Shown here: piece after piece, positions 3,257 through 62,167 of the stretch
Layout of the letters: each line of letters opens with the position of its first letter
How positions within the stretch are numbered: the stretch's first letter is position 1
Source: Leucoraja ocellata
Lineage: Eukaryota
Reading direction: 5' to 3'
NCBI GenBank assembly: GCA_036785375.1
Contig: JAWMAR010000070.1
Location: 7,378,001 to 7,442,000, forward strand
Length of the DNA: 64,000 nt
Position numbers and translations under genes: made by a program
The notes under the pieces: model-generated
Databases searched by the model: none
Told to the model about the DNA's origin: nothing
Seen by the model: the letters and a program-made list of their open reading frames with translations, nothing else

Positions 3257-3772
3257 TCACTGCACTGCCAGCTTGGTGTTTAGTTTACACGGCACGTTAT
3301 TAACCAGCCAAGCGCAGGAATATTTCCCAGCATCTTCCTCTTCCAGCCCCGTCAGGACCAACGAGGCGTCCCGTGTCTCAACCACGTTTGTTTTCATGAA
3401 CTTCCTGCGTCCGGGTGACCCTGGATATTGCGCACCGTTCCTGTCAGTAAACACGGCGATCGTATCTTTTCCTTTTGTCCACAGCACCACAAATTTATCG
3501 GCTGCACCGTCTTCTTTGGGCATTTTGCAGGATAGTTGAGCAGAACCACCCTTACTGGCCGTCACCTCTGTCCATCTCATCTTATCCGGAGCGAGGTTAA
3601 CAGCGCATTGTGGAGTTGGATTTTCGGTGACTTGTCGAGGAGCCCGTGCGTTCCGCCCGGCCAAGTTTGCTTCCTCTCCCCATTCTCTGGAGATCGGACC
3701 TGTTCCAGTTGCGGAGACTTGCCACACCATCTCCACAAGGACCATGAATCCTATCCATTTCTGCAGTCCCAT
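3257..3772 (-). CDS. Secreted single V-set Ig-domain protein, copy A1 (171 aa)
   Basis: ATG at 3772, 4 nt after a CACAG acceptor. Signal peptide MGLQKWIGFMVLVEMVWQVSA; propeptide ending RAPR|Q; V-set hallmarks GGSAQLSC, W, DASLVLTGL..EDAGKYSC; stop right after the G strand; AATAAA (minus) at 3185-3190. Confidence 0.88.
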   Translation of the reverse strand: MGLQKWIGFMVLVEMVWQVSATGTGPISREWGEEANLAGRNARAPRQVTENPTPQCAVNLAPDKMRWTEVTASKGGSAQLSCKMPKEDGAADKFVVLWTKGKDTIAVFTDRNGAQYPGSPGRRKFMKTNVVETRDASLVLTGLEEEDAGKYSCAWLVNNVPCKLNTKLAVQ

Positions 3773-4416
3773 GTTCCTGTGGGTGAAACAATGGGTCACC
3801 TTATTGCAACTCAGTAGGATTCATGATGACATTCCCTGAACCCGCCCAGAGTTGGGGAATCGAGAACCAGAGGACATCGGTTTAAGGCGAGGGGGGGGAA
3901 GATTTAATGGGAAATGAGGGGTGACTTTTTTACACAAAGGGTGGAGGGTGTTTGGAACGAGCTGCAAGAAGAGGTAGTTGAGGCAGGTACTATCACAATG
4001 ATTAAGAAACAGTTAGACAGGTACATTGATAGGACAGGATTAGGGGGGTAAGGGCCAAACGCAGGCAGGTGGGTCTAGTATTGATGGGACACGTTGGTGG
4101 GCGCGGGCAAGTTGGGCCGAAGGTCTCGCTGTGACTCTATGACTCCATCACTTGCCCCACCCCAGTCATTCCTCCTTCTCCCTGGTCCTGTCTAGCAGAA
4201 GGTACAGAAGCTTGAAAGCGCGCACCACCAGACTCAGGAACAGCTTCTTCCCCTCTGCTATCAGGCTTCTGAACTGGGGGAACAGTGAACAGAGACAATC
4301 CCACCCCCATCACTCACAGACACTTGAAGGATCCACAGGGTTGGTTACCAGCTCCGGAGTCTCCACACAGGGTGACGGGGTCGGTCTTGTTCTCATCTCC
4401 TGCCATCGCTCGCTCC

Positions 4417-4615
4417 TTTTATACCGACTCCCGGCTTCTCCTGCCCCTCATTGTCTGCCCTCACGTACATTCAACCAATCACTGCCTCCCACGGAGCATT
4501 GGCCGGAGTCAGCCGCGACCTCTCCACCCTCTGCCAAACGTGTCGTTGCATCAGCCGTTAACGTTTAACAAGAACAACGTCATCCCAGCTGCCAGCGGAC
4601 AACCAGGCGCCCAAC
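4417..4615 (-). promoter_or_regulatory. Promoter of A1: TATAAAA (4417-4423), ERSE (4475-4493), second CCAAT, TGATGCAA element
   Basis: Motifs read directly; block nearly identical in all nine copies and placed upstream of a GTGAGT donor and the CAG acceptor before the ATG. Confidence 0.7.
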
Positions 4616-6019
4616 ACATAGCGCCGTAAGACAACAACACCACCACTGCGCCACTGTGCTGCCCTTGCATTGGCCTCTTGCACAAGTTATAAAAGTATAA
4701 GATTCAGATAGGGTAGACAGTCAGAACCAATGTTCCATGGTGAAAATGCCAAGGACTAGAGGGCAACTCGTCAGGGTGAAAAAGAAAAAAAGGTTACGAT
4801 GTGCGGGGCATGTCTTCTTGGTGGGTGCTTGGAACACACTTGGTTGAAGCAGATACAATAGTTCGGAGGCTTTATCTGAAAAATCTCATGGATATACAGA
4901 GAATGGAGAATTATGGTTCACATGCAGGCAGAGGAGATTAGCTGAACTAGGCATCATGTTCAGCACGGATCTTGTGGGCCGAAGGGCCTGTTCCTGTGCT
5001 GTTCCATGTTCTATGTTACATCATCTTCTCAATCACATCTTGAGAAGAACGTTTTCCAGAGGTGCCCTGGTACCACCAGTGTGACATTCATTGTATCTGC
5101 TGCAGTCAATGAGTGTGTTGTGTAGACAGCCAGAGGAGAAGATGGGATTTATGTGGAGTTTCATTTTGTAATCATTATTTATTTAATGTCATAGTGTAAT
5201 AGAGTCATAGAGTGATACAGCGTGGAAACAGGCCCTTCGGCCCAACTTGCCCACACTGGCCAACATGTCCCAGCTACACTAGTCTCACCTGCCTGTGTTT
5301 GGTCCATATCCCTCCAAACCTGTCCTCTCCATGTACCTGACTCACTGTTCCTTAAACATTGGGATCTAAATGTTGCCTCACCAACACAAGATGACCTCCC
5401 AACCTCTATACTCCATACTGTGACTGATGAAGGCCAAAGTACCAAAAGCCTTTTTGACCACCGTATCTACCTGCAACTGCATCTTCAAGGAACCATGTAC
5501 CTTCTCTCATAGATCCCTCTGCTCTACAACATTCCCCAGAGCCGGACTATTCACTGTGTAGGTCCTGCACATGTTAGACTCCCCAAAACACAACACCTCA
5601 CATTACTCTGTATTAAATTCCATCAACCGTTCCTCAGCCCAACTGGCCAATATTTCAGGATGCTGCTGCAATTTTTCACAACCATCTCCACTATCTGCAA
5701 AACCGCCTACTTTTGTGTCATAGAAACATAGAAAATAGGTGCAGGAGTTGAGGCCATTCAGCCCTTCGAGCCTGCACCGCCATTCAATATGATCATGGAT
5801 GATCATCCAACTCAGTATCCTGTACCTGCCTTCTCTCCATACCCCCTGATCCCTTTAGCCACAAGGGCCACATCTAACTCCCTCTTAAATATAGTCTTTA
5901 CTTTTGTCCCTGTTTTGTTCCTGACAACATTCCCCGTTATTTTTGTTCCTGTTCTCAACATCTGCGGACTCCTGATTTTCCACATGTTGTTCCGTCCCCG
6001 TGTGGTCATGGACAATGTT

Positions 6020-6143
6020 GGACACAGCTCATAGAAGCCGGCGATGTTGCCCGTAGTGAGCAAAAGTTGCACAAAGTTCACACCCAACTCAATGCTGGCG
6101 TACAAAGAATCACTCACACCGGCTGTCTTCAAGAGAGTTTATT
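6020..6143 (-). terminator. Putative polyadenylation signal of A2 (AATAAA 6138-6143) with GT-rich downstream element
   Basis: ~110 bp block conserved downstream of A2, A3 and all B genes. Confidence 0.6.
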
Positions 6144-6536
6144 TCCATTAATGATACATTTACCAATGCAAGCACGATCTGTCCCATTGCACTACATTTG
6201 CCCCATATCCCCCTAAACCTTTCCCTGTCCCAAGTGTGTATTAAATATTGTTACAATTCCCACCCCACCAGACAGTTCTATAAACCCACCGCCCCCTGAG
6301 TGAAAATGTTGCCCCTCAGGTTCCTATTAAATCTTGCCCCTCTAACCTTAAACTTATGTCCCCCTGGTTCTTGATTCCCGTACCCCAGGTAAAAGATGTT
6401 TTGTGTTCACCCCTCTATTCCCCTCATGATGAATTAAGTGACTACAATATAGAATGCTGTTGTTGGCCTAAGTGTGTGAAGTTTATAATGATGGATGTTA
6501 TTGTGTGTTTGTGCTGTCCTGCCACTGCCTGTTGTT

Positions 6537-7052
6537 TCACTTCACTGTCAGCTTGATATTTAGTCTACATTCCTTTTGGCCAGTGAACCAAGCGCAGGAA
6601 TATATCCCAATATCAGTCTCGAGTAAACCTATGATGACCAACGAGGCATCCCGTGTCCCATCCACGTTTGTATTCATGAACCTCCAGCGGCCGACCCCCC
6701 CTGGATAGGTCGCACCATTCCCTTTAGTAAACACGCCCAGTGTCCCGCTCCCTTTACTCCAGGTGATCACAAAATTCGCGGGTCCAGTCTTCCCTGTGGG
6801 TACTTTACAGGGTAGCGTAGCAGAACCACCCCTGCGTGCCGTCACATCCGTGTATTTCATCTTGTTCGCAGCTGGCTTAGCACCGCATTCTGGAGAACTT
6901 TGTTTTTTGACTTGTCGAGGCTCTCGTGCGTTCCACCCGGGCAAGTTTGCTTCCTCTCCCCATTCTCTGGAGATCGGACCTGTTCCAGTTGCGGAGACTT
7001 GCCACACCATCTCCACAAGGACCATGAATCCTATCCATCTCTGCAGTCCCAT
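6537..7052 (-). CDS. Secreted single V-set Ig-domain protein, copy A2 (171 aa)
   Basis: Same leader; REPR|Q; GGSATLPC, ITW, DASLVIIGL..TDIGIYSC, extra G-strand Cys (ECRLNIKLTVK*). Confidence 0.88.
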   Translation of the reverse strand: MGLQRWIGFMVLVEMVWQVSATGTGPISREWGEEANLPGWNAREPRQVKKQSSPECGAKPAANKMKYTDVTARRGGSATLPCKVPTGKTGPANFVITWSKGSGTLGVFTKGNGATYPGGVGRWRFMNTNVDGTRDASLVIIGLLETDIGIYSCAWFTGQKECRLNIKLTVK

Positions 7053-7199
7053 GTTCCTGTGGGTGAAACAATGGGTCACCTTATTGCAACTCAGTAGGAT
7101 TCATGATGACATTCCCTGAAGCTGCTGCCACCACACTGGGCAATGTCGCTGTGCAGCTTCTACAGCTCCCGCCTGGTTTAGTTTAAGTTGCTTTGACCT

Positions 7200-7600
7200 G
7201 TCGTGGACCAACAACATTGAAGTGGCAGCCAAGGAGGCACACCAATGCATCTACTTCCTCAGAGACAGAGGAAATACGACAAGTCTCCAATGTCTCTTAG
7301 AAACTTCTACAGATGCACCACAGAGAGCAGACTGTGGGGTTGCATCACAGCTTGGTTTGGGAACAGCTCTGAGCCCAAGATCACAAGATATTGCAGAGTT
7401 GTGGATGGAGCCCAGTCCATCACACAGACCACACTCCCCACCAGTGACTCCATCTACAACCAAAAAAATCAAAGACTTGTCCCACCCCGGTCATTCCTCC
7501 TTCTCCCTGGTCCTGTCTAGCAGACGGTACAGAAGCTTGAAAGCGCGCACCACCAGACTCAGGAACAGCTTCTTCCCCTCTGCTATCAGGCTTCTGAACT
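7200..7600 (+). mobile_element. Rex1/Babar-like non-LTR retrotransposon 3' fragment inside the A2 intron
   Basis: Translations ..AHQCIYFLR.., ..LRNFYRCTTESRLWGCITAWFGN.., ..RRYRSLKARTTRLRNSFFPSAIRLLN, typical of this LINE clade's C-terminus. Confidence 0.7.
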
Positions 7601-7741
7601 GGGGGAACAGTGAACAGAGACAATCCCACCCCCATCACTCACAGACACTTGAAGGATCCACAGGGTTGGTTACCAGCTCCGGAGTCTCCACACAGGGTGA
7701 CGGGGTCGGTCTTGTTCTCATCTCCTGCCATCGCTCGCTCC

Positions 7742-8014
7742 TTTTATACCGACTCCCGGCTTCTCCTGCCCCTCATTGTCTGCCCTCACGTACATTCAAC
7801 CAATCACTGCCTCCCACGGAGCATTGGCCGGAGTCAGCCGCGACCTCTCCACCCTCTGCCAAACGTGTCGTTGCATCAGCCGTTAACGTTTAACAAGAAC
7901 AACGTCATCCCAGCTGCCAGCGGCCAACCAGGCGCCCCACACATCCTGCTTGTGTCTCCACCACGTCTCGCTTTGGCCACCCATCGGACCAGATGTCCCA
8001 GCCACGCCACGTCA
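7742..8014 (-). promoter_or_regulatory. Promoter of A2: TATA 7742-7748, ERSE 7800-7818, TGATGCAA element, UPRE TGACGTGG (8007-8014)
   Basis: Motifs read directly; conserved with the other copies. Confidence 0.7.
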
Positions 8015-24949: not shown

Positions 24950-25072
24950 GACACAGCTCATAGAAGCCGGCGATGTTGCCCGTAGTGAGCAAGAGTTGCA
25001 CAAAGTTCACACCCAACTCAATGCTGGCGTACAAAGAATCACTCACACCGGCTGTCTTCAAGAGAGTTTATT
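24950..25072 (-). terminator. Putative polyadenylation signal of A3 (AATAAA 25067-25072) with GT-rich element
   Basis: Conserved 3' block shared with A2 and the B genes. Confidence 0.6.
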
Positions 25073-29628: not shown

Positions 29629-29632
29629 GAAC

Positions 29633-43818: not shown

Positions 43819-46800
43819 TTCAGCAGGGCCAGTCCCAGGGTCAGTAACAAAGTCTAGTTTAGTTTAGTTTAGTTCCGTTCAGAGGTACAACAGGGAAACA
43901 AGCCCTTCGGCCACAGAGTCAATGGGGACCAGTGATCACCCCATATACTAGTACTATCCCACACACTAGATACAATTTACACTGACCAATTAACCTACAA
44001 ACCTGCACGTCTCTGGGGTGTGGGACGAAACCGGAGCTCCCGGATTCCAAAGAGGAAGGAAGAGTTAGGGGCGACCGTGGCTGACAAGGGAAGTCAGGGA
44101 CACTATCACAAATGCATTTCGTTGTCTCTGTTCTGTACACTGACAATGACAATTAAATTGAATCTGAATCTGATAAAAGTGAACAGGTATAACGTTGCAA
44201 AGATGAGCGGAAAGCCAGGGGATTAGGTAACTCTTTTAAAGAGCAACAGAAGATAACTAAAAAAGCAATACGGGGAGAAAAGATGAGGTATGAAGGTAAG
44301 ATAGCCAAGAATAGAAAGGAGGATCGTAAAAGCTTCTTTAGATATGTGAAAAAAATTAGTTCAGACTAAAATTGGTCCTTTATAGACTAAAAACTTTGGA
44401 TCCGTCTTCACTAAGGAGAACACAAACAATCTCCCTGATGTACTAGTGGCCAGAGGATCTGGGGACAACGGAGAGCCAGTGGATGTAGTGTACCTGGACT
44501 TGCAGGAAGTATTTGATAAGGTCCCACATAGGAGATTAGTGGGCAAAATTAGAGCACATGGTATTGGGGGAAGGGCCTGTTTCCATATTGTTTGACTCTG
44601 ACACTAAGTAGGGAATAGTAAAGGTATAAAGATGAGCAGCGTGGAAGGTGTGAGCGTGGATCGCCTGCAGTGAGGAGAACTGACCTTGCTTGCACCGGTA
44701 AATGTACGTTTAATTTAAATAAACTTTCCTCTGCCTGCCCTGAAGACAGCCGGTGTGAGTGATTCTTTGTACGCCAGCATTGAGTTGGGTGTGAACTTTG
44801 TGCAACTTTTGCTCACTACGGGCAACATCGCCGGATTAAAGGGCCTGTCCCACGAGCATGCGACTCCATGCGGCAAGCGCGACCTAACGTGGTCACTTGA
44901 GCCGTACGGCCTCGCGGGGCCGGTCCCACTTTGATCGCCGGAGCCGTATGGAGTTGTGTGGAGCTGGTCCCGACATCGCGCGGGGCTCTGAAAAACTGAA
45001 TATGTTAGGATATGGAAACAGGTTCTTCGGCCCACCGAGTCTAACCCAACCAGTGATCACCCCTACACTAGTTCTAACCTACCCACTAGGGACAATTTAC
45101 TGAAGCCAATTAACCATCAAATCTACACGTCTTTGCAATCTGAAAGGGAACCAGAGCACCCGGAGGAAACCCACATGGTCCCAGGGACAATGTACATACA
45201 CTGTACAGACAGTGCCCGTAGTTACCATCGAAGGCGGGTCTCTAGCGCTGTAAGGCAGCAACTCTACCGCTGCGCCACTGTACCGCCCCTGCATTGCCCT
45301 CGTGCATTGTTAGGGCTGCTGATTAGAGTCCAGTTTTGACCCTCGTTGGGTGTCAATTGTGGTTGTCAAGGAGCTTTCTTACCTCCGTATGGAGCCTGGT
45401 CTTCCAGTTATAGACCCACACCACCCTGGCCACACTCTCTTATCACCACTACTGAGGGGAAGGTACAGGAGCCTGAGAACCGTGAGCTCCAGGTTCAAGA
45501 GCAGCTTCTTCCCAGCAAGCACAAGGTTGTTGAACCAGCCTGCACAACCCCAACCACAACCCTACGCCACTCACCACAACCCTACACAACCCTGATGGAT
45601 ACTGCACCACTGGTGATGCCCCACGTACGTTGTCTTGTACTATCATGGTCTGGTTTACTTGGAATAACTGAGACCTTATTGTGTACTTATGGTGTAAGTA
45701 TATAATCATGATAGGCCAGGGTAGACAGTGGAGGGCTGCCACTACAGAGCCACCCATAGACCTGATAGAATTATATAAAGTTACTGTGCAGACCAAGACC
45801 AACGGCTCATTTCTCCGTTTCCCCTCTTCCTCCTCTTCACCCTCCCTCTTCAATACCTAGAGAGGGAGGAGGGGTAGAGAGGGAGAGAGGCAGAGAGAAA
45901 GGGGGTAGAGAGAGAGTGGGAAGGGGTAGAGGGAGAAGGAGGGTGGTAGTGGGGGGGTGGAGGGATTAAATACATTCTTCTCAAGCTTACCCCCAGTCTA
46001 GTTCAGTCAAAAACCACTGAGTCAAGCACTGGAACAATTAATCTTTATTTTTGGACTGTACATCTAATTCAACTACACGATACCTAAACCACTGCGGGTT
46101 CAATCCTTGTATCTGCTTGGCCAAACCCTTCAGCCTCGTGCAAGCAGAAACACTCCAAAAGGTCACGCTGTCCCAAGGATTCTTCCAGAAGATCGACAAA
46201 GGACCTCGTGGGGGCTGCCTTTTATAAGTCCCCGAACCTTGAGGGGCCGAACTACATAGGGGTGGTCTCTTTACAATCCAATCAAACATATTAATTACAT
46301 CAGTATATTATAGACAGTTCCCCAGACCACTAACAGATCCCATACATTGTTTCAGGAGAAGCTTCTGGAAGATACTAACTTAACTTGAATAATGCAACAT
46401 TTACCCTGGAATTCAAACAAACCTGCCAGGGCTCAACACTTTAGCCAATCAACAAACAGTAGGATAACTGCCTGGCACATTATATACAATATTTACAATG
46501 CTGTTGCAGTAATCCAATCAACCATGCATTTACACTTCATTGGAGGTCATCTCCTTGCACGGAAATCGGCATCAAAACATGGGGGTGCACAATTCCATGG
46601 CGGCACACATGCACACGCGTGCATGCGGCACACACGCGAGGATTCGGCCGTGGGCCCTGTGGACGGTAACATCGGGAGCTGACTTGGTTGGTGACCGACT
46701 CCGAACTCCAGCAACAGCAGCTTCGTCCGCCCGGAATCGTGAGGCTTGAATCGGCCCGTTCGCGGGGCCTTTCATCGCCCGACGGGGGTTTCAACATTGG

Positions 46801-48865: not shown

Positions 48866-49091
48866 GACGTGGTGGAGACACAAGCAGGATGTGTGGGGCG
48901 CCTGGTTGGCCGCTGGCAGCTGGGATGACGTTGTTCTTGTTAAACGTTAACGGCTGATGCAACGACATGTTTGGCAGAAGGTGGAGAGGTCGCGGCTGAC
49001 TCCGGCCAATGCTCCGTGGGAGGCAGTGATTGGTTGAATGTACGTGAGGGCAGACAATGAGGGGCAGGAGAAGCCGGGAGTCGGTATAAAA
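48866..49091 (+). promoter_or_regulatory. Promoter of B4 (ERSE 49015-49033, TATA 49085-49091)
   Basis: Same motif block. Confidence 0.7.
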
Positions 49092-49740
49092 GGAGCGAGC
49101 GATGGCAGGAGATGAGAACAAGACCGACCCCGTCACCCTGTGTGGAGACTCCGGAGCTGGTAACCAACCCTGTGGATCCTTCAAGTGTCTGTGAGTGATG
49201 GGGGTGGGATTGTCTCTGTTCACTGTTCCCCCAGTTCAGAAGCCTGATAGCAGAGGGGAAGAAGCTGTTCCTGAGTCTGGTGGTGCGCGCTTTCAAGCTT
49301 CTGTACCTTCTGCTAGAGAGGACCAGGGAGAAGGAGGAATGACCGTGGGTGGGACAAGTGATGGAGTCATAGAGTCACAGCGAGACCTTTGGCCCAACTT
49401 GCCCGCGCCCACCAACGTGTCCCCATCAATACTAGACCCACCTGCCTGCGTTTGGCCCTTACCCCTCTAATCCTGTCCTATCAATGTACCTGTCTAACTG
49501 TTTCTTAATCATTGTGATAGTACCTGCCTCAACTACCTCTTCCGGCAGCTCGTTCCAAACACCCTCCACCCTTTGTGTAAAAAAGTCACCCCTCAGTTTT
49601 CCATGAAATCTTTCCCCCCCCCTCGCCTTAAACCGATGTCCTCTGGTTCTCGATTCCCCAACTCTGGGCGGGTTCAGGGAATGTCATCATGAATCCTACT
49701 GAGTTGCAATAAGGTGACCCATTGTTTCACCCACAGGAAC

Positions 49741-50280
49741 ATGGGACTGCAGAGATGGATAGGATTCATGGTCCTTGTGGAGATGGTGTGGCAAGTCTCC
49801 GCAACTGGAACAGGTCCGATCTCCAGAGAATGGGGAGAGGAAGCAAACTTGGCCGGGCGGAACACACGGGCGTATTTCAAAGTCACCAATGAACCGCTTC
49901 CAAGATGCACGAACGAGTCAGATTCTGATGCCATCAGTCATCACCCATCACCGATTAACAAGAAGGTGCTCGTTGCATCTCTGGGTGGTTCTGTTACGTT
50001 GCCATGTAATATATCCATCCTTAAAAATCATTACAGGGTTGTTCAATGGAAAAAAGATGGTGTTCAAATTGCCAGTTTCCATGAGAGAGCGTATGCGCGT
50101 TATACGGGGTCTGATGTTCACTGGAAGTTCGTTGATCACGACGTCTATATGGCTCAGGACGCCACGTTGCTCCTGACAGGTGTAAAAGAGGAAGATACAG
50201 GGACGTATTCCTGTGTTTGGTTCCATTATAGAGATAGACCGTTTTGTGAATTATTGATGCAGCTGATGATCTCTCACTGA
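49741..50280 (+). CDS. Secreted single V-set Ig-domain protein, copy B4 (179 aa, B1-type)
   Basis: Leader; RNTR-AYFK; CNISILKNHYRVVQW; EDTGTYSCVWFHYRDRPFC. Confidence 0.9.
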   Translation: MGLQRWIGFMVLVEMVWQVSATGTGPISREWGEEANLAGRNTRAYFKVTNEPLPRCTNESDSDAISHHPSPINKKVLVASLGGSVTLPCNISILKNHYRVVQWKKDGVQIASFHERAYARYTGSDVHWKFVDHDVYMAQDATLLLTGVKEEDTGTYSCVWFHYRDRPFCELLMQLMISH

Positions 50281-53200
50281 TTCAGCAGGGCCAGTCCCAG
50301 GGTCAGTAGCAAAGTCTAGTTTAGTTTAGTTCCGTTCAGAGGTACAACAGGGAAACAAGCCCTTCGGCCCACAGAGTCAACGGGGACCAGTGATCACCCC
50401 ATATACTAGTTCTATCCCACACACTAGATACAATTTACACTGACCAATTAACCTACAAACCTGCACGTCTCTGGGGTGTGGGACGAAACCGGAGCACCCG
50501 GATTCCAAAGAGGAAGGAAGATTCCAAGGGGAGTTAGGGGCGACCGTGGCTGACAAGGGAAGTCAGGGACACTATCAAAATAAAAGAGAACAGGTATAAC
50601 GTTGCAAAGATGAGCGGAAAGCCAGGGGATTAGGTAACTCTTTTAAAGAGCAACAGAAGATAACTAAAAAAGCAATACGGGGAGAAAAGATGAGGTATGA
50701 AGGTAAGATAGCCAAGAATAGAAAGGAGGATCGTAAAAGCTTCTTTAGATATGTGAAAAAAATTAGTTCAGACTAAAATTGGACCTTTATAGACTAAAAA
50801 CTTTGGATCCGTCTTCACTAAGGAGAACACAAACAATCTCCCTGATGTACTAGTGGCCAGAGGATCTGGGGACAATGGAGAGCCAGTGGATGTAGTGTAC
50901 CTGGACTTGCAGGAAGTATTTGATAAGGTCCCACATAGGAGATTAATGGGCAAAATTAGAGCACATGGTATTGGGGGAAGGGCCTGTTTCCATATTGTTT
51001 GACTCTGACACGAAGTAGGGAATAGTAAAGGTATAAAGATGAGCAGCGTGGAAGGTGTGAGCGTGGATCGCATGCAGTGAGGAGAACTGACCTTGCACTG
51101 GTAAATGTACGTTTAATTTAAATAAACTTTCTTCTGCCTGCCCTGAAGACAGCCGGTGTGAGTGATTCTTTGTACGCCAGCATTGAGTTGGGTGTGAACT
51201 TTGTGCAACTTTTGCTCACTACGGGCAACATCGCCGGATTAAAGGGCCTGTCCCACGAGCATGCGACTCCATGCGGCAAGCGCGACCTAACGTGGTCACT
51301 TGAGCCGTACGGCCTCGCGGGGCCGGTCCCACTTTGATCGCCGGAGCCGTATGGAGTTGTGTGGAGCTGGTCCCGACATCGCGCGGGGCTCTGAAAAACT
51401 GAATATGTTAGGATATGGAAACAGGTTCTTCGGCCCACCGAGTCTAACCCAACCAGTGATCACCCCTACACTAGTTCTAACCTACACACTAGGGACAATT
51501 TACTGAAGCCAATTAACCATCAAATCTACACGTCTTTGTAATCTGAAAGGGAACCAGAGCACCCGGAGGAAACCCACATGGTCCCAGGGACAATGTACAT
51601 ACACTGTACAGACAGTGCCCGTAGTTACCATCGAAGGCGGGTCTCTAGCGCTGTAAGGCAGCAACTCTACCGCTGCGCCACTGTACCGCCCCTGCATTGC
51701 CCTCGTGCATTGTTAGGGCTGCTGATTAGAGTCCAGTTTTGACCCTCGTTGGGTGTCAATTGTGGTTGTCAAGGAGCTTTCTTACCTCCGTATGGAGCCT
51801 GGTCTTCCAGTTATAGACCCACACCACCCTGGCCACACTCTCTTATCACCACTACTGAGGGGAAGGTACAGGAGCCTGAGAACCGTGAGCTCCAGGTTCA
51901 AGAGCAGCTTCTTCCCAGCAAGCACAAGGTTGTTGAACCAGCCTGCACAACCCCAACCACAACCCTACGCCACTCACCACAACCCTACACAACCCTGATG
52001 GACACTGCACCACTGGTGATGCCCCACGTACGTTGTCTTGTACTATCATGGTCTGGTTTACTTGGAATAACTGAGACCTTATTGTGTACTTATGGTGTAA
52101 GTATATAATCATGATAGGCCAGGGTAGACAGTGGAGGGCTGCCACTACAGAGCCGCCCATAGACCTGATAGAATTATATAAAGTTACTGTGCAGACCAAG
52201 TACAAACCCAACGCAATATTCCACCACTCACCCATTCCCCAACGCTATATATTCCACCACTCACTCATAGCCCCTAATTGTGCAGGAGCGGCTCATTTCT
52301 CCGTTTCCCCTCTTCCTCCTCTTCACCCTCCCTCTTCAATACCTAGAGAGGGAGGAGGGGTAGAGGGAGGGCGTAGAGAGGGAGAGAGGCAGAGAGAAAG
52401 GGGGTAGAGAGAGAGTGGGAAGGGGTAGAGGGTGAGGGAGGGGGGGGGGGGGTAGAGTGGGGTGGAGGGATTAAATACATTATTTTCAAGCTTACCCCCA
52501 TTCTAGTTCAGTCAAAAACCACTGAGTCAAGCACTGGAACAATTAATCTTTATTTTTGGACTGTACATCTAATTCAACTACACGATACCTAAACCACTGC
52601 GGGTTCAATCCTTGTATCTGCTTGGCCAAACCCTTCAGCCTCGTGCAAGCAGAAACACTCCAAAAGGTCACGCTGTCCCAAGGATTCTTCCAGAAGATCG
52701 ACAAAGGACCTCGTGGGGGCTGCCTTTTATAAGTCCCCGAACCTTGAGGGGCCGAACTACATAGGGGTGGTCTCTTTACAATCCAATCAAACATATTAAT
52801 TACATCAGTATATTATAGACAGTTCCCCAGACCACTAATAGATCCCATACATTGTTTCAGGAGAAGCTTCTGGAAGATGCTAACTTAACTTGAATAATGC
52901 AACATTTACCCTGGAATTCAAACAAACCTGCCAGGGCTCAATACTTTAGCCAATCAACAAACAGTAGGATAACTGCCTGGCACATTATATACAATATTTA
53001 CAATGCTGTTGCAGTAATCCAATCAACCATGCATTTACACTTCATTGGAGGTCATCTCCTTGCACGGAAATCGGTATCAAAACATGGGGGTGCACAATTC
53101 CATGGCGGCACACATGCACACGTGTGCATGCGGCACACACGCGAGGATTCGGCCATGGGCCCTGTGGACGGTAACATCGGGAGCTGACTTGGTTGGTGAC

Positions 53201-55373: not shown

Positions 55374-55599
55374 GACGTGGTGGAGACACAAGCAGGATGT
55401 GTGGGGCGCCTGGTTGGCCGCTGGCAGCTGGGATGACGTTGTTCTTGTTAAACGTTAACGGCTGATGCAACGACACGTTTGGCAGAGGGTGGAGAGGTCG
55501 CGGCTGACTCCGGCCAATGCTCCGTGGGAGGCAGTGATTGGTTGAATGTACGTGAGGGCAGACAATGAGGGGCAGGAGAAGCCGGGAGTCGGTATAAAA
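55374..55599 (+). promoter_or_regulatory. Promoter of B5 (ERSE 55523-55541, TATA 55593-55599)
   Basis: Same motif block. Confidence 0.7.
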
Positions 55600-56250
55600 G
55601 GAGCGAGCGATGGCAGGAGATGAGAACAAGACCGACCCCGTCACCCTGTGTGGAGACTCCGGAGCTGGTAACCAACCCTGTGGATCCTTCAAGTGTCTGT
55701 GAGTGATGGGGGTGGGATTGTCTCTGTTCGCTGTTCCCCCAGTTCAGAAGCCTGATAGCAGAGGGGAAGAAGCTGTTCCTGAGTCTGGTGGTGCGCGCTT
55801 TCAAGCTTCTGTATCTTCTGCTAGACAGGACCAGGGAGAAGGAGGAATGACCGGGGTGGGACAAGTGATGGAGTCATAGAGTCACAGCGAGACCTTCGGC
55901 CCAACTTGCCCGCGCCCACCAACGTGTCCCCATCAATACTAGACCCACCTGCCTGCGTTTGGCCCTTACCCCTCTAATCCTGTCCTATCAATGTACCTGT
56001 CTAACTGTTTCTTAATCATTGTGATAGTACCTGCCTCAACTACCTCTTCCGGCAGCTCGTTCCAAACACCCTCCACCCTTTGTGTAAAAAAGTCACCCAT
56101 CAGTTTCACATTAAATCTTTCCCCCCCCCCCCTCGCCTTAAACCGATGCCCTCTGGTTCTCGATTCCCCAACTCTGGGCGGGTTCAGGGAATGTCATCAT
56201 GAATCCTACTGAGTTGCAATAAGGTGACCCATTGTTTCACCCACAGGAAC

Positions 56251-56787
56251 ATGGGACTGCAGAGATGGATAGGATTCATGGTCCTTGTGGAGATGGTGTG
56301 GCAAGTCTCCGCAACTGGAACAGGTCCGATCTCCAGAGAATGGGGAGAGGAAGCAAACTTGGCCGGGCGGAACGCACGGGCCCCTCGGCAAGTCACCAAT
56401 GAAACGCTTCCAAGATGCACGAACGAGTCAGATTCTGATGCCATCAGTCATCACCTATCAACGATTAACAAGAAGGTGCTCGTTGCATCTCTGGGTGGTT
56501 CTGTTACTTTGCCATGTAATGTATCCAACGTTGACAATAGTCCCGAGGTTACATGGAATAAAGATGGTGTTGAAATTGCCTATTTCCATAGTAGAGTGCA
56601 TGAGCGTTATAAGGGATCTGATGTTCACTGGAAGTTCGTGCAACGAAACGTCCTTTGGGAACAGGACGCCACGTTGCTCCTGACAGGTGTAAAAGAGGAA
56701 GATAAAGGGACGTATTCCTGTGTTTGGATCAAGTATCGTCAGAAACCGGTTTGTGAATTATTGATGCAGCTGATGATCTCTCACTGA
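56251..56787 (+). CDS. Secreted single V-set Ig-domain protein, copy B5 (178 aa)
   Basis: Differs from B3 by one residue (RYKG vs RYTG). Confidence 0.9.
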   Translation: MGLQRWIGFMVLVEMVWQVSATGTGPISREWGEEANLAGRNARAPRQVTNETLPRCTNESDSDAISHHLSTINKKVLVASLGGSVTLPCNVSNVDNSPEVTWNKDGVEIAYFHSRVHERYKGSDVHWKFVQRNVLWEQDATLLLTGVKEEDKGTYSCVWIKYRQKPVCELLMQLMISH

Positions 56788-59700
56788 TTCAGCAGGGCCA
56801 GTCCCAGGGTCAGTAACAAAGTCTAGTTTAGTTTAGTTTAGTTCCGTTCAGAGGTACAACAGGGAAACAGGCCCTTCGGCCACAGAGTCAATGGGGACCA
56901 GTGATCACCCCATATACTAGTTCTATCCCACACACTAGATACAATTTACACTGACCAATTAACCTACAAACCTGCACGTCTCTGGGGTGTGGGACGAAAC
57001 CGGAGCTCCCGGATTCCAAAGAGGAAGGAAGATTCCAAGGGGAGTTAGGGGCGACCGTGGCTGACAAGGGAAGTCAGGGACACTATCACAATAAAAGAGA
57101 ACAGGTATAACGTTGCAAAGATGAGCGGAAAGCCAGGGGATTAGGTAACTCTTTTAAAGAGCAACAGAAGATAACCAAAAAAGCAATACGGGGAGAAAAG
57201 ATGAGGTATGAAGGTAAGATAGCCAAGAATAGAAAGGAGGATCGTAAAAGCTTCTTTAGATATGTGAAAAAAATTAGTTCAGACTAAAATTGGTCCTTTA
57301 TAGACTAAAAACTTTGGATCCGTCTTCACTAAGGAGAACACAAACAATCTCCCTGATGTACTAGTGGCCAGAGGATCTGGGGACAATGGAGAGCCAGTGG
57401 ATGTAGTGTACCTGGACTTGCAGGAAGTATTTGATAAGGTCCCACATAGGAGATTAATGGGCAAAATTAGAGCACATGGTATTGGGGGAAGGGCCTGTTT
57501 CCATATTGTTTGACTCTGACACTAAGTAGGGAATAGTAAAGGTATAAAGATGAGCAGCGTGGAAGGTGTGAGCGTGGATCACATGCAGTGAGGAGAACTG
57601 ACCTTGCTTGCACCGGTAAATGTACGTTTAATTTAAATAAACTCTCTTCTGCCTGCCCTGAAGACAGCCGGTGTGAGTGATTCTTTGTACGCCAGCATTG
57701 AGTTGGGTGTGAACTTTGTGCAACTTTTGCTCACTACGGGCAACATCGCCGGATTAAAGGGCCTGTCCCACGAGCATGCGACTCCATGCGGCAAGCGCGA
57801 CCTAACGTGGTCACTTGAGCCGTACGGCCACGCGGGGCCGGTCCCACTTTGATCGCCGGAGCCGTATGGAGTTGTGTGGAGCTGGTCCCGACATCGTGTG
57901 GAGCTGGTCCCAACATCGCATATGTTAGGATATGGAAACAGGTTCTTCGGCCCACCGAGTCCAACCCAACCAGTGATCACCCCTACACTAGTTCTAACCT
58001 ACACACTAGGGACAATTTACTGAAGCCAATTAACCATCAAATCTACACGTCTTTGCAATCTGAAAGGAAACCAGAGCACCCGGAGGAAACCCACATGGTC
58101 ACAGGGACAATGTACATACACTGTACAGACAGTGCCCGTAGTTACCATCGAAGGCGGGTCTCTAGCGCTGTAAGGCAGCAACTCTACCGCTGCGCCACTG
58201 TACCGCACCTGCATTGCCCTCGTGCATTGTAGGGCTGCTGATTAGAGTCCAGTTTTGACCCTCGTTGCGTGTCAATTGTGGTTGTCAAGGAGCTTTCTTA
58301 CCTCCGTATGGAGCCTGGTCTTCCAGTTATAGACCCACACCACCCTGGCCACAAACAGTAGGATAACTGCCTGGCACATTATATACAATATTTACAATGC
58401 TGTTGCAGTAATCTAATCAACCATGCATTTACACTTCCTTGGAGGTCATCTCCTTGCACGGAAATCGGCATCAAAACATGGGGGGCCACAATTCCATGGC
58501 GGCACACATGCACACGCGAGGATTCGGCCGTGGGCCCTGTGGACGGTAACATCGGGAGCTGACTTGGTTGGTGACCGACTCCGAACTCCAGCAACAGCAG
58601 CTTCGTCCGCCCCGAATCGTGAGGCTTGAATCGGCCCGTTCGCGGGGCCTTTCATCGCCCGGCGGTGGTTTCAACATTGGTATTGATGTGGATAGAGAAC
58701 TGGCTGGCAGACAGAAAGCAAAGAGTAGGAGTAAACGGGTCCTTTTCAGAATGGCAGGCAGTGACTAGTGGGGTACTGCAAGACTCAGTGCTGGGACCCC
58801 AGCTATTTACGATATATATTAATGATCTGGATGAGGGAGTTGAATGCAACATCTCCAAGTTTGCAGATGACACGAAATGGGGGGCAGTGTTAGCTGTGAG
58901 CAGGATGCTAGGAGGCTGCAAGGTGACTTGGATAGGTTGGGTGAGTGGGCAAATGCATGGAAGATGCAGTATAATGTGGATAAATGTGAAGTTATCCATT
59001 TTGGTGGCAAAAACAGGAAAGTAGATTATTATCTGAATGGTGGCCGATTAGGAAAAGTGGAGATGCAACGAGACCTGTGTGTCATGGTACACCGGTCATT
59101 AAAAGTAGGCATGCAGGTGCAGCAGGCAGTGAAGAAAGAGAATGGTATGTTAGCATTCATAGCAAAAGGATTTGAGTATAAGAGCAGGGAGGTTCTACTG
59201 CAGTTGTACAGGGTTTTGGTGAGACCACACCTGGAGTATTGCGTACAGTTTTGGTCTCCTAATCTGAGGACAGACATTCTTGCCATAGAGAGAGTACAGA
59301 GAAAGTTCACCAGACTGATTCCTGGGATGTCAGGACTTTATGGCATACTGAGTTGGATGATCAGTATAATCATATTAAATGGCAGTGCAGGCTCGAAGGG
59401 CCGAATGGCCTACTCCTGCACCTATTTTCTATGTTTCTATGGGAGCCTCGATCGCCTCGATGCAGCAGTTTGATTTTAAGCCGCTCGGGCGCTGAAAGGC
59501 CCCGCGAACGGGACGATTCTGCCCATAGAAAGCGTCTGATAAAGTCCGGAACACAAAACATGGGCGGGGGGGAATCGTCCCCCACCTCCCAAAGCATAGG
59601 GAGACGTGCCCCATGTCCCCCCCCAGGATTTCCGCCCATGGCGGTCACGATATCTCCTTCACCGCCGCAGTCTCGACGCCTCTTTGATGGCCGCGAAAAA

Positions 59701-60756
59701 CCCCATGTGGGGCGTAGAAGGCCGGGTCGGATAAAGCGGAAAGTTAATTTCAATGAGGTCCTCCCCCTGACATCACTGGAAGCTGCTGGTCGACCACTCC
59801 CCCTTTGTGACATCACTCGAAGGGGGGTGAAGGTTTGCCGTTTAATAAGTTGGTTTTCACTATTTTTAAAACGCTATAACTTGTGAACTACAGCATGTAA
59901 TGTGAAGTGGAGCAGTTTATTTTGTCAAAGGGGTTAATGTGATTAATAATGTGCGGAGGAGGGGAGGAGGAGAGGGGAGAGAAGGAGGAGGGTGTAGACG
60001 AGGGGGAGGGAGTGTAAGAGACTCGCCTGCGCAGTTGTGGGGTATGGGTGAGTGGTGGAATATTACGTTGGGGGGACGGGTACATCGCAAAGGAATCTCA
60101 TTTAGATTTCTTGGGAGGAGGCTTTTCATTGTGGGGGGTGGAATTGCTGAGAGGTTTCATTTACTCCTTATTTATAAAATAATTACGATTGTGGGGAGGG
60201 GTGGGTTGGGGGCGGGGGCTCCCCGTTTCATTGTGGGGGGGTGGAGTAAGAGAGAGGTTTCATTTCCAGAATTTTCCTTGTGGGAGGGTGGGGTGAGTAT
60301 TGTGGGGTATGGGTGAGTGGTGGAATATTACGTTGGGGGAACGGGACCCAACGGGTCCCACTTGGTCTAGTTATCATTATTTATTTAATGTTTCACGTTT
60401 ACACCAATCTCTCCACCACCACGAACAAGCAGCACAAGACGCAACAAGACAGACACCATTGTATGCAGATGCCGAGAAGTGTGATCAGCTCTGGCTGAAC
60501 AACTAATCTTGTGTGTGGATTCGATAAGCAGAAGATTTAATGTCATAGTGTTATACAGTCATAGAGTGATATAGCATGGAAACAGGCCCTTTGGCCCAAC
60601 TTGCCCGCATTGGACAACATGTCCCAGCTACAATAGTCCCACCTGTCCACGTTTGGTCCATATCCCTCCAAATCTGACCTATCCCTGTTCCTGTCTAGCT
60701 GTTTCTTAAACGTCGGGATAGTTTCTGCCTCAACTGCGATGGGTTGACCAGAACGA

Positions 60757-60982
60757 GACGTGGTGGAGACACAAGCAGGATGTGTGGGGCGCCTGGTTGG
60801 CCGCTGGCAGCTGGGATGACGTTGTTCTTGTTAAACGTTAACGGCTGATGCAACGACACGTTTGGCAGAGGGTGGAGAGGTCGCGGCTGACTCCGGCCAA
60901 TGCTCCGTGGGAGGCAGTGATTGGTTGAATGTACGTGAGGGCAGACAATGAGGGGCAGGAGAAGCCGGGAGTCGGTATAAAA
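60757..60982 (+). promoter_or_regulatory. Promoter of B6 (ERSE 60906-60924, TATA 60976-60982)
   Basis: Same motif block. Confidence 0.7.
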
Positions 60983-61630
60983 GGAGCGAGCGATGGCAGG
61001 AGATGAGAACAAGACCGACCCCGTCACCCTGTGTGGAGACTCCGGAGCTGGTAACCAACCCTGTGGATCCTTCAAGTGTCTGTGAGTGATGGGGGTGGGA
61101 TTGTCTCTGTTCACTGTTCCCCCAGTTCAGAAGCGTGATAGCAGAGGGGAAGAAGCTGTTCCTGAGTCTGGTGGTGCGCGCTTTCAAGCTTCTGTACCTT
61201 CTGCTAGACAGGACCAGGGAGAAGGAGGAATGACCGGGGTGGGACAAGTGATGGAGTCATAGAGTCACAGCGAGACCTTTGGCCCAACTTGCCCGCGCCC
61301 ACCAACGTGTCCCCATCAATACTAGACCCACCTGCCTGCGTTTGGCCCTTACCCCCCTAATCCTGTCCTATCAATGTACCTGTCTAACTGATTCTTAATC
61401 ATTGTGATAGTACCTGCCTCAACTACCTCTTCCGGCAGCTCGTTCCAAACACCCTCCACCCTTTGTGTAAAAAAGTCACCCCTCAGTTTCCCATGAAATC
61501 TTTCCCCCCCCCTCGCCTTAAACCGATGTCCTCTGGTTCTCGATTCCCCAACTCTGGGCGGGTTCAGGGAATGTCATCATGAATCCTACTGAGTTGCAAT
61601 AAGGTGACCCATTGTTTCACCCACAGGAAC

Positions 61631-62167
61631 ATGGGACTGCAGAGATGGATAGGATTCATGGTCCTTGTGGAGATGGTGTGGCAAGTCTCCGCAACTGGAA
61701 CAGGTCCGATCTCCAGAGAATGGGGAGAGGAAGCAAACTTGGCCGGGCGGAACGCACGGGCTCCTCGACAAGTCACCAATGAAACGCTTCCAAGATGCAC
61801 GAACGAGTCAGATTCTGATGCCATCAGTCATCACCTATCAACGATTAACAAGAAGGTGCTCGTTGCATCTCTGGGTGGTTCTGTTACTTTGCCATGTAAT
61901 GTATCCAACGTTGACAATAGTCCCGAGGTTACATGGAATAAAGATGGTGTTGAAATTGCCTATTTCCATAGTAGAGTGCATGAGCGTTATACAGGATCTG
62001 ATGTTCACTGGAAGTTCGTGCAACGAAACGTCCTTTGGGAACAGGACGCCACGTTGCTCCTGACAGGTGTAAAAGAGGAAGATAAAGGGACGTATTCCTG
62101 TGTTTGGATCAAGTATCGTCAGAAACCGGTATGTGAATTATTGATGCAGCTGATGATCTCTCACTGA
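61631..62167 (+). CDS. Secreted single V-set Ig-domain protein, copy B6 (178 aa)
   Basis: Protein identical to B3; a synonymous GTT/GTA difference near the end. Confidence 0.9.
   Translation: MGLQRWIGFMVLVEMVWQVSATGTGPISREWGEEANLAGRNARAPRQVTNETLPRCTNESDSDAISHHLSTINKKVLVASLGGSVTLPCNVSNVDNSPEVTWNKDGVEIAYFHSRVHERYTGSDVHWKFVQRNVLWEQDATLLLTGVKEEDKGTYSCVWIKYRQKPVCELLMQLMISH

Follow-up and report, generated by a model that had tools for sequence, protein, structure and literature searches.

A tandem array of nectin-type V-domain genes in the skate Leucoraja ocellata, probably encoding secreted, diversifying binders

The VCBPs of amphioxus and Ciona are secreted proteins of gut immunity whose V domains are diversified in the germline; they comprise two V domains and a chitin-binding domain. 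Pregnancy-specific glycoproteins and their CEACAM relatives are secreted derivatives of membrane-bound adhesion and pathogen-receptor proteins of the immunoglobulin superfamily (IgSF), encoded in tandem and fast evolving. Precursors of venom peptides such as conotoxins, and of antimicrobial peptides, combine a signal and pro region that hardly varies and contains a convertase-type site with a hypervariable mature part. In cartilaginous fish, Ig clusters occur in germline-joined form. The SITRs of carp and zebrafish form a germline multigene IgSF family without TM or signalling motifs and are secreted on stimulation (PMC3031540). In the nectin, nectin-like and PVR group, which includes TIGIT, CD226 and CD96, the named members are all anchored in the membrane, either as V-C-C followed by TM or as V followed by TM and a signalling tail. 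Known partners of nectin/PVR D1 (the first domain) include adhesion receptors, immune receptors and attachment proteins of viruses (PMC2777377).

The locus described here lies in a window of 64,000 nt from Leucoraja ocellata (GCA_036785375.1, contig JAWMAR010000070.1, positions 7,378,001-7,442,000, forward strand), which was analysed as a whole and carries nine genes, g1 to g9. Like the VCBPs, their predicted products are secreted, germline-diversified V-type domains, but VCBPs have two V domains and a chitin-binding domain, and no chitin-binding domain is present in the window proteins. The design of tandem, fast-evolving, secreted IgSF derivatives is that of the pregnancy-specific glycoproteins; these, however, are placental proteins of mammals, with more than one Ig domain and an origin in CEACAM, not nectin. 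Conotoxin-type precursors show the same gene-family design, but their mature part is short and disulfide-rich whereas that of the skate is a 110-residue Ig domain, and the skate array homogenises even intron and promoter. SITRs are likewise a germline multigene IgSF family without TM, but they have two Ig domains and a CD300-like V and occur in another lineage. The V-set fold is common to Ig, TCR and IgNAR V segments and to NITRs, the last also germline-encoded, but the skate genes are without RSS, FGxG, split leader, and C or TM exon. The best match, by sequence profile and by predicted fold (a nine-strand V-type domain), is to the nectin/PVR group. Unlike its named members, the skate genes encode one V followed by a stop; they also differ by two additional Cys, by the long disordered linker ahead of the domain and by tandem diversification.

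Nine intact ORFs of 170-179 aa, reported in the initial annotation, were confirmed (Table 1); lengths are counted from an ATG that is the 10th codon of every listed ORF. Subfamily A comprises three genes on the minus strand (g1-g3) and subfamily B six on the plus strand (g4-g9), with g3 and g4 oriented head-to-head. The repeat unit is about 6.5 kb, each with its own promoter and poly(A) module. Every ORF is open, and tblastn with skate proteins gave nine V matches at E<=0.01 and no broken extra copy, in keeping with the proposal of a multigene, intact family. LINE fragments are abundant around the array. Eight of the nine proteins are distinct, because g6 and g9 are identical. Since no more than about five V types in the window are clearly distinct, the earlier description as a "nanobody-like repertoire" is too strong; moreover, no specific likeness to antibody, VHH or VNAR V domains was found.

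Table 1. Coordinates of the nine V-domain genes in the window (position 1 is its first base). ORF, listed open reading frame; bits, Pfam V-set score.
Feature	Span	Strand	Details
g1 gene (A)	3185..4493	-	ERSE 4475-4493; TATAAAA starts 4423; exon-1 ATG 4406; last exon-1 base 4318, then GTGAGT; last intron base 3777; nearest AATAAA 3190
g1 CDS	3257..3772	-	171 aa + stop; ORF 3257-3799; 36.9 bits
g2 gene (A), promoter to 3' module	6037..7818	-	ERSE 7800-7818; TATA 7748; exon-1 end 7643; last intron base 7057; AATAAA 6143; exact 40-mer 6088-6127
g2 CDS	6537..7052	-	171 aa + stop; ORF 6537-7079; 32.6 bits
g3 gene (A), promoter to 3' module	24966..26745	-	ERSE 26727-26745; TATA 26675; exon-1 end 26570; last intron base 26024; AATAAA 25072; 40-mer 25017-25056
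g3 CDS	25507..26019	-	170 aa + stop; ORF 25507-26046; 39.8 bits
g4 gene (B), promoter to 3' module	28910..31134	+	ERSE 28910-28928; TATA 28980; exon-1 end 29085; last intron base 29628; AATAAA 31017; 40-mer 31044-31083
g4 CDS	29633..30172	+	179 aa + stop; ORF 29606-30172; 33.9 bits
g5 gene (B)	36048..38270	+	ERSE 36048-36066; TATA 36118; exon-1 end 36223; last intron base 36767; AATAAA 38153; 40-mer 38180-38219
g5 CDS	36772..37308	+	178 aa + stop; ORF 36745-37308; 41.2 bits
g6 gene (B), read base by base	42555..44835	+	ERSE 42555-42573; TATAAAA 42625-42631; exon-1 ATG 42642; exon 1 ends 42730; donor GTGAGT 42731-42736; acceptor AG 43276-43277; exon 2 from 43278; AATAAA 44718; 95-nt core 44741-44835
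g6 CDS	43282..43818	+	178 aa + stop; ORF 43255-43818; 40.7 bits
g7 gene (B)	49015..51238	+	ERSE 49015-49033; TATA 49085; exon-1 end 49190; last intron base 49736; AATAAA 51121; 40-mer 51148-51187
g7 CDS	49741..50280	+	179 aa + stop; ORF 49714-50280; 34.5 bits
g8 gene (B)	55523..57753	+	ERSE 55523-55541; TATA 55593; exon-1 end 55698; last intron base 56246; AATAAA 57636; 40-mer 57663-57702
g8 CDS	56251..56787	+	178 aa + stop; ORF 56224-56787; 41.0 bits
g9 gene (B)	60906..63195	+	ERSE 60906-60924; TATA 60976; exon-1 end 61081; last intron base 61626; AATAAA 63078; 40-mer 63105-63144
g9 CDS	61631..62167	+	178 aa + stop; ORF 61604-62167; V-set; 0 non-synonymous differences from g6

Each gene has two exons: an ERSE and TATA promoter precedes a short 5' exon and an intron of about 545 nt, and a single V-bearing exon follows. 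The ERSE (ER-stress element, CCAAT-N9-CCACG) stands about 70 nt upstream of the TATA box, and nine matches were observed against 0.13 expected. Promoter, donor and acceptor motifs are present in all nine genes; the middle part of intron 1 of g2 is unlike the other copies. A conserved AATAAA with a 95-nt core lies downstream of eight of the genes and is the only downstream element common to both subfamilies, g1 being the sole gene without it (its nearest AATAAA is 66 nt past the stop). The initial annotation had overlooked both this 3' module and the non-coding-looking 5' exon. The distance from TATA box to exon-1 ATG is only 17 nt, and exon 1 is probably untranslated, the transcription start being a prediction. 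The Leucoraja RefSeq models begin at the exon-1 ATG. The resulting N-terminal extension is not conserved in a related protein of the electric ray Narcine, whereas the hydrophobic leader is; were the exon-1 ATG used, this hydrophobic segment would be internal and its cleavage less certain.

Exon 2 alone carries the predicted signal peptide, a disordered linker (RxxR) and the V domain, so that the leader is not split. All nine proteins score above the Pfam V-set gathering threshold (32.6-41.2 bits; cut-off 26), and all of them share, without variation, the B-strand Cys, C-strand Trp, D-A-x-L and D-x-G-x-Y-S-C. AlphaFold models g6 with low confidence over residues 1-68 and places the V domain at 70-177; the G strand reaches residue 177 of 178, so the stop follows it directly, and neither the model nor a sequence scan shows a C-terminal tail beyond it. 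Four Cys are invariant in 16/16 sequences; two of these form an extra, family-specific pair, between the N-terminal segment and the G strand, that may make a second disulfide. The signal peptide and "propeptide" are predictions from the protein sequences. A 19-residue Kyte-Doolittle scan gave no TM-like segment outside the Ig strands, and among 609 stop-to-stop pieces 50 aa or longer the crude Ig hallmark C..W..[YF]xC matched the nine ORFs and one chance ORF only, which reveals no further Ig exon in the 64 kb. No RSS with a 12- or 23-spacer was matched in the window at up to 3 mismatches, and the nine proteins are without FGxG. The earlier reading of these genes as non-rearranging, multigene, single-V units that lack TM and C exons within the window and stop directly after the G strand thus stands; what does not is the statement that they could not be assigned to a named family.

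By sequence profile and predicted fold, the V domain is nearest to domain 1 of nectin/PVR (CD155) and is not antigen-receptor-like. The best solved relative by sequence profile is CD155 D1 (E 7.7e-10), with nectin-2, CD226 and TIGIT also matched; by fold, the best are the D1 domains of nectin-1, CD155 and nectin-2 (E 3.8e-9; 27-29% identity to CD155). Antibody V domains rank below the CD155 and nectin D1 domains. Only eight full-length relatives were found, seven "uncharacterized" skate proteins and the Narcine protein, which NCBI names "nectin-1-like"; the family is seen in two skate genera and an electric ray, so far in batoids only. The g1 protein is 98.8% identical to L. erinacea LOC129708945 and g4 92% to LOC129708939, and in seven of seven skate RefSeq models the protein ends at this position or 15 residues beyond it, without adding a domain. 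The AX6G "lock" and T(Y/F)P "key" are the PVR lock-and-key motifs as defined in PMC10486284. The Narcine protein retains the lock as well as the key, the latter as TYP. The lock is kept in g1, g3 and 3/8 relatives; its loss in seven of the nine window copies, together with that of the TYP key in all nine, makes canonical nectin-type docking doubtful.

The two subfamilies combine a conserved cassette with a divergent V exon. About 1 kb at the 5' side is about 98-99% identical between A and B (98.3-98.4% by blastn over -896 to +148), whereas their V domains differ at about 45% of bases; their 3' flanks are unalignable. Within subfamily B, the V exon is 12.9-14.1% divergent against 0.7-2.2% for the flanks. 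V-region dN/dS is 3.1 for g2-g3 (one-sided Fisher p 0.026) and 2.0-3.6 across g4/g7 versus g5/g6/g8/g9 (p 0.003-0.056, the upper value belonging to one pair, which is not significant); three shallow pairs give p 0.13-0.25. As the B pairs share one deep branch, these amount to only about two independent contrasts. Change is centred on the loops (dN about 0.31, against about 0.10 in strands), with the most variable columns in BC, C'C'', DE and FG. Since dS is also raised in the V loops (0.13-0.17 versus 0-0.04 in strands), part of the V "island" may stem not from new mutations but from small conversion tracts, or from old divergence that outlasted homogenisation of the flanks. In deep comparisons dN/dS is 0.6-1.0, which taken alone would also fit relaxed constraint. 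Together, the dN/dS ratios, the loop-centred change and the divergence of V exon versus flanks support selection of the V domain for diversity.

We consider it probable that these genes form a tandem family in batoids, whose products are secreted and diversifying V domains of nectin type that serve as soluble binders or decoys. Exon 2 would encode a cleavable signal peptide, a disordered linker or propeptide of about 45 residues with RxxR, and then the V domain, derived from the adhesion and virus-receptor V domains of nectin/PVR (CD155) type. The product would be a free-standing V domain of about 110-130 residues with the canonical B-F disulfide. Its exon would evolve as that of an arms-race binder, by mostly amino-acid-altering changes in the four loops named above, while the parts for expression and export (promoter, exon 1, intron 1, the signal and pro region, and the poly(A) module) are near-identical across subfamilies, most likely by gene conversion. 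Candidate targets are ligands that ordinarily bind D1 domains of nectin type, for example viral or microbial attachment proteins, or the animal's own nectin/PVR-family receptors.

A small secreted protein, a tandem array, dN/dS >1 and a conserved prepro cassette would also fit secretions of glands or the reproductive system (the jelly or capsule of eggs, clasper or seminal fluid, gel of the skin or ampullae), their fast evolution then being due to sexual or gamete-recognition selection and not to pathogens. An ERSE promoter would suit a heavy-duty secretory cell, and no result here ties the genes to immune tissue; the parent fold, however, is nectin/PVR D1, with partners of the kinds given in PMC2777377, and we regard this reading as unlikely. 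It is improbable that the V domains are not free and are instead held at the membrane or in a complex, through an undetected exon or a disulfide from the extra Cys to a partner. The two extra invariant Cys and a weak GT in g3 (ACA|GTGATG) just before the stop would allow it, but the even Cys count is compatible with two internal disulfides, and the B-subfamily ORFs are without GT in their last 20 nt. The stop after the G strand in 9/9 genes, the lack of another Ig exon in 64 kb, the AATAAA module as sole shared downstream element and the RefSeq models of seven skate genes, which add no downstream coding exon, all argue against it as well.

The array might also be silent or decaying DNA, copied with the surrounding repeats and intact only through recent duplication. 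Depth on two ORFs was zero in two small possible-RNA runs (14 and 18 million letters), the remaining sequencing runs behaving as DNA; g6, g8 and g9 are nearly identical, deep dN/dS is near 1 and the region is full of LINE fragments. Yet, despite the difference of about 45% in V bases between A and B, 9/9 genes and 8/8 relatives keep the frame and every Ig core residue. Substitutions cluster in the loops, two skate genera and an electric ray have retained the family, and few if any copies have a damaged promoter, splice site or poly(A) module, which makes such decay very improbable. Antigen-receptor V genes joined in the germline (of Ig light-chain, TCR or NAR type) with C exons outside the window have a precedent in the Ig clusters of cartilaginous fish, and the domain does include the G strand. 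This is scarcely credible, being contradicted by the RSS, FGxG, leader, C-exon and best-match tests: there is no FGxG and no RSS, the leader is unsplit within the signal peptide, and the frame closes with a stop after the G strand. Every 6.5-kb unit is equipped with a promoter and a poly(A) module, no C exon lies between the units, and the V domains match CD155 and nectin D1 better than antibody V domains.

If the reading as secreted nectin-type V domains is true, the array would represent a germline family of soluble binders derived from nectin-type D1.

All nine open reading frames (ORFs) that the initial annotation placed in the array are present and intact at the coordinates it assigned, as recovered in an ORF listing of the window; in every mechanically listed ORF the start ATG is the 10th codon. 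Counted from that ATG, the proteins of g1 to g9, the genes numbered in window order, are 171, 171, 170, 179, 178, 178, 179, 178 and 178 aa long; g6 and g9 encode the same protein, from which that of g8 is one residue away. The two subfamilies, A and B, meet head to head at g3 and g4. Each of the nine proteins exceeds the Pfam V-set gathering score (26), at 32.6-41.2 bits, which bears out the assigned fold, and across their alignment there is no variation in the leader, the B- and F-strand Cys, the C-strand Trp, D-A-x-L or D-x-G-x-Y-S-C. Residues 1-20 look like a signal peptide, with a basic start, a 12-residue hydrophobic core and V-S-A ahead of the predicted cut. In the predicted structure, this core is modelled as a helix (residues 7-15), residues ~21-68 are disordered (pLDDT below 50), and residues 70-177 form a V domain of nine strands, with pLDDT of 68-92 in 10-residue blocks, mostly ~80-90. 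An RxxR motif lies within the disordered segment in 16/16 sequences of the family alignment, and a convertase cut at this putative site is therefore possible. Also as claimed, translation ends directly after the G strand, the stop falling one residue past it in both alignment and model, and a Kyte-Doolittle scan of 19 residues finds no transmembrane (TM)-like stretch outside the Ig strands; nor is there a GPI-signal tail, the proteins ending without one. Four Cys positions show no variation across the 16 sequences, that of the electric ray Narcine included: the canonical pair, one ahead of strand A and one opening strand G. The extra pair (candidate Cys56-Cys168 of the model) likely forms a second internal disulfide.

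RefSeq models of the skate homologues carry an N-terminal extension of 31 residues; in tblastn the first 30 of these match, at 100% identity, a site ~550-600 bp ahead of every one of the nine ORFs. The promoter and splice features read there in g6 are listed in the table; the TATA, donor and acceptor strings are identical in 9/9 copies. The sole intron sits 4 nt 5' of the ORF ATG, such that the whole signal peptide and the V domain are in exon 2. Every TATA box is preceded, at a distance of ~70 nt and on the opposite strand, by a perfect ER-stress element (ERSE, CCAAT-N9-CCACG); the window holds nine matches to this element against 0.13 expected, every one at a promoter. The nine were copied from one block and therefore count once, as a single event in evolution. 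Just 17 nt separate the exon-1 ATG from the TATA box, closer than the usual transcription start, and the extension modelled for the Narcine relative is unrelated to the skate one, with the hydrophobic leader kept. From this spacing and the unrelated extension, we infer that exon 1 is untranslated and that translation begins at MGLQ.

Coordinates of array features and repeats in the window
Feature	Position	Strand	Remark
Subfamily A, g1-g3	g1 coding 3257-3772	minus	
Subfamily B, g4-g9	g9 coding 61631-62167	plus	
g6 TATAAAA	42625	+	base-by-base reading
g6 exon-1 ATG	42642	+	base-by-base reading
g6 exon 1 end	42730	+	followed by consensus GTGAGT donor
g6 acceptor (cacccacAG)	ends 43277	+	base-by-base reading
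g6 ORF ATG	43282	+	strong context
95-nt core copies	6037-6131, 24966-25060, 31040-31134, 38176-38270		
95-nt core copies, continued	44741-44835, 51144-51238, 57659-57753, 63101-63195		
AT-rich spacer g2-g3	8989-~24000		tandem repeat, period 5,683 bp
~150-nt element, g6 unit	42237-42384, 42926-43074		~76% identity
LINE-type RT fragments	32382-33407, 35131-35640, 40524-41120, 53493-54089, 58877-59473		among subfamily B genes
145-aa stop-to-stop piece	24708-25142	+	opposite g3 3' end

At the other end of the genes, subfamilies A and B have in common an AATAAA followed by a GT-rich core of 95 nt; the remaining 3' flanks cannot be aligned between them. A 40-mer from the core has eight exact copies in the window, one after each of g2-g9 in gene orientation and none elsewhere, ~390-430 nt past the stop in A and ~870 nt past it in B. 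The module is absent downstream of g1. Over the genes aligned (g2-g7), the core has a single-base difference between A and B. We read AATAAA plus core as a putative poly(A)/termination module. When 151 translated pieces from the g1-g3 3' flanks were compared with the subfamily B flanks in search of downstream exons, nearly all of the 254 matches were multi-copy repeats in both orientations, and the sole colinear, family-specific element was this module. The module is no structured RNA (z -0.38), and Rfam has no match anywhere in the window. The core is kept identical even though it would be placed beyond the cleavage site.

A block that spans -896 to +148, counted from the ATG, is 98.3-98.4% identical between A and B; it takes in the promoter, exon 1, the repeat-bearing intron 1 and the codons of the signal and pro region, and its 3' edge falls a few codons from the RxxR site. 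Past it, ~45% of aligned bases in the V domain differ between the subfamilies and the flanks look random. Since the identity extends through the intron, gene conversion is favoured over protein-level constraint; the alignments thus argue for a block homogenised by conversion. Within subfamilies, the V exon stands out against its surroundings: it differs by 9.9% between g2 and g3 (flanks 1.0-2.5%) and by 12.9-14.1% when, in subfamily B, the g4/g7 type is set against the g5/g6/g8/g9 type (flanks 0.7-2.2%). In the V region, g2 and g3 give a dN/dS (Nei-Gojobori) of 3.1, and pairs that straddle the B split give 2.0-3.6, with one-sided Fisher p values of 0.026 for g2-g3 and 0.003, 0.007, 0.018 and 0.056 for the four B pairs tested; the B pairs lie on one common branch, so these amount to about two independent contrasts. 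Three shallower pairs are not significant by the same test. Loop codons change threefold faster than strand codons (dN ~0.31 and ~0.10), but loop dS is likewise elevated, so that part of the pattern may stem from old divergence that was preserved, or from conversion over short tracts. Among 15 skate sequences, the most variable columns are in the BC, C'C'', DE and FG loops. In deep comparisons dN/dS is 0.6-1.0; frame and core residues are nonetheless kept in every copy.

Rearranging Ig, TCR and IgNAR V segments carry a recombination signal (RSS), a heptamer-spacer-nonamer, after the V exon, an intron near the end of the leader, and FGxG in the J segment or G strand. The array had been claimed to have neither RSS nor FGxG, and both claims hold: patterns with 12- and 23-nt spacers gave 0 matches in the 64 kb with up to 3 mismatches allowed, and the G strand opens with C-x-L. 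Moreover, unlike in those segments, the array leader is unsplit and lies entirely in exon 2. With RSS and FGxG missing and no C exon in the window, we reject the reading of the array as antigen-receptor V genes. VCBPs and PSGs are further secreted, germline-diversified families of the Ig superfamily (IgSF). VCBPs consist of two V domains then a chitin-binding domain, and the mismatch to this layout noted earlier stands as well; each array protein has one V-set stretch, with otherwise only overlapping Ig models above the Pfam threshold. A screen for the GH18 motif DxxDxDxE, covering every piece of 30 aa or longer in the window, gave one chance match and no chitinase. Teleost SITRs are another secreted, germline-diversified IgSF family; they combine a pair of Ig domains, of which the C-proximal is CD300-like (PMC3031540). 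The array proteins, in contrast, are single-domain, and among solved structures CD155 and the nectins stand closest to them. No CD300 entry occurs among the 60 PDB sequence matches listed or among the Foldseek matches listed.

The initial annotation could not assign the proteins to a named family, but their V domain can be placed: by structure prediction and Foldseek, the D1 (N-terminal IgV) domains of nectin-1, CD155 (PVR) and nectin-2 take the top ranks. Identity to CD155 D1 in these matches is 27-29%, and 2B4, PD-L1, CAR and CD96 are runners-up close behind. Likewise, the top eight matches of the family profile to PDB are all CD155 entries (E 7.7e-10 to 1.7e-8), and CD155 D1 is followed by MXRA8, nectin-2, JAML and CD226, with TIGIT further down. 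The protein atlas returned generic V-set clusters only, one labelled OX-2/CD200-like. Nectins, Necls, PVR, TIGIT, CD226 and CD96 are type I membrane proteins with a V-C-C, V or V-V ectodomain, a TM helix and a cytoplasmic tail. In contrast, the array proteins have no TM-like segment, and the window has no further Ig exon. Thus, the V domain descends from a nectin/PVR-type D1, and the proteins themselves are not nectins because the membrane-anchored multi-domain layout, a defining feature, is absent. In the PVR family, docking uses a lock, AX6G, situated in C'-C'', and a key, T(Y/F)P, carried by the FG loop (PMC10486284). The lock is present in 2/9 window proteins (g1 and g3 only) and 3/8 relatives, and the key in 0/9 and 1/8, the latter being the Narcine protein, which holds both together. 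In these motifs, an apparently ancestral nectin/PVR signature is visible, yet mostly lost among skates.

A HMMER scan against 1.84 billion representatives gave 1234 proteins at E<=0.001. Among the best 150 of the 1234, two full-length single-stretch matches were found, the skate cluster and a Narcine bancroftii protein of 218 aa labelled 'nectin-1-like' by NCBI, and the others were multi-Ig. Word-index searches returned seven skate proteins (six from Leucoraja erinacea, one from Rhinoraja longicauda), all annotated 'uncharacterized', and the Narcine one, with no others. In a tree of the mature regions, A and B each form a clade, alongside a third one absent from the window that unites two Leucoraja genes with that of Rhinoraja; Narcine falls outside. 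One Leucoraja erinacea protein shares 98.8% identity with that of g1, and the best matches of the other genes share 79-92%; the window thus stems from this species or one closely related to it. None of six LOC identifiers appears in any paper, and no description of the family was found in searches on nectin, PVR, V-set or IgSF in skates and cartilaginous fish. A secreted stand-alone nectin-type V domain, tandemly multiplied, whose prepro and control modules show toxin-like conservation, is thus undescribed in the literature searched, supplementary files excepted. The genes already exist as RefSeq 'uncharacterized' or 'nectin-1-like' models; hence the sequences are not new but the reading is.

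Several repeats accompany the array. Within the AT-rich g2-g3 spacer, each of three 300-nt probes recurs with 100% identity at a spacing of 5683, and three ORF sets share the offset; identity this perfect over such long copies may mean that the duplication is very recent or that the assembly is at fault. The ~150-nt element, probably an interspersed repeat, is present twice in the g6 unit and in all others but g2: one copy directly precedes the conserved 5' cassette and the second lies inside intron 1. The central part of the g2 intron 1 (region 7222-7435) cannot be aligned with the other eight copies, and the cassette match is interrupted between unit positions 2118 and 2433. The LINE-type fragments, the first of which matches RVT_1 at E 3e-27, were duplicated along with the subfamily B genes. 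The 145-aa piece opposite the g3 3' end is a chance match to a crude Ig hallmark pattern; inspection of its sequence by eye found no other Ig feature.

Four of five sequencing runs were mapped to the stretch 25000-30999. Reads of runs X1 and X2, both of unknown kind, cover 30/30 and 29/30 of its bins, intergenic DNA included, and therefore behave as DNA. Their contigs differ from the g4 V exon (29838-30118) by other letters (e.g., at 29838, 29843, 30041, 30044, 30090, 30112, 30116 and 30118) and two 1-base indels; these variants are alleles or further close paralogues outside the window. X4 and X5 are small and were taken as possible RNA runs; neither covers the ORF bins 25400-25999 and 29600-30199 at all, their depth being confined to repeat bins, from which nothing firm follows about expression. 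The exon 1-exon 2 junction of the RefSeq models hints at transcript support.

At the level of anatomy, the array on the best-supported view probably encodes nectin-type V domains that are secreted in free form, with binding loops driven to diversify and conversion keeping the expression and export modules uniform. Under this model, conversion would hold those modules alike across the copies, and the binding loops of the free domains would be pushed to diversify. The same data are consistent with a reproductive or glandular secretion shaped by sexual selection, which we consider unlikely; that would still be a new family, of narrower interest. Tethering through an unseen exon or an interchain disulfide is weakened by the stop after the G strand and the lack of a further Ig exon in the window, and seems to us highly improbable. 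Slighter still is the chance that the array is silent, a proposal weakened by specific tests, and, with no RSS, FGxG or C exon, we give next to no weight to antigen-receptor V genes.

What secreted nectin-type V domains would do can be guessed from their relatives. Viral attachment proteins, and D1 domains themselves, bind the CC'FG face and tip of nectin/PVR D1 (PMC2777377). Because both dock there, a natural guess, as to target as well as role, is that the array proteins act as soluble decoys or modulators of nectin/PVR D1 contacts. More speculatively, and with considerable doubt, the array might serve germline humoral recognition in batoids, as a set of secreted single-V decoys, perhaps dozens, with pathogen-driven loops and a converted cassette that keeps the variants expressed and exported. 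That cassette would comprise the ERSE/TATA promoter, the signal and pro region, and the poly(A) module. It has been proposed that soluble nectin/JAM-type pathogen receptors can act as neutralising humoral factors that predate antibodies (PMC2777377); if true, the humoral reading would supply a living example of this soluble-receptor-before-antibody proposal.

The homogenised control modules and the V exon that escapes homogenisation provide a clean natural case in which to study how conversion and diversifying selection divide up one gene. Small, stable, naturally soluble V domains with two disulfides could also serve as binder scaffolds. Nectin- and JAM-type V domains are the usual docking sites of viruses and the proposed stock of antigen receptors, with soluble forms as an intermediate step (PMC2777377). 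A secreted, tandem, positively selected family of nectin-type D1 domains, if true, would make this idea of antigen-receptor origin testable in a living animal, and would be a new kind of innate humoral factor in elasmobranch immunity.
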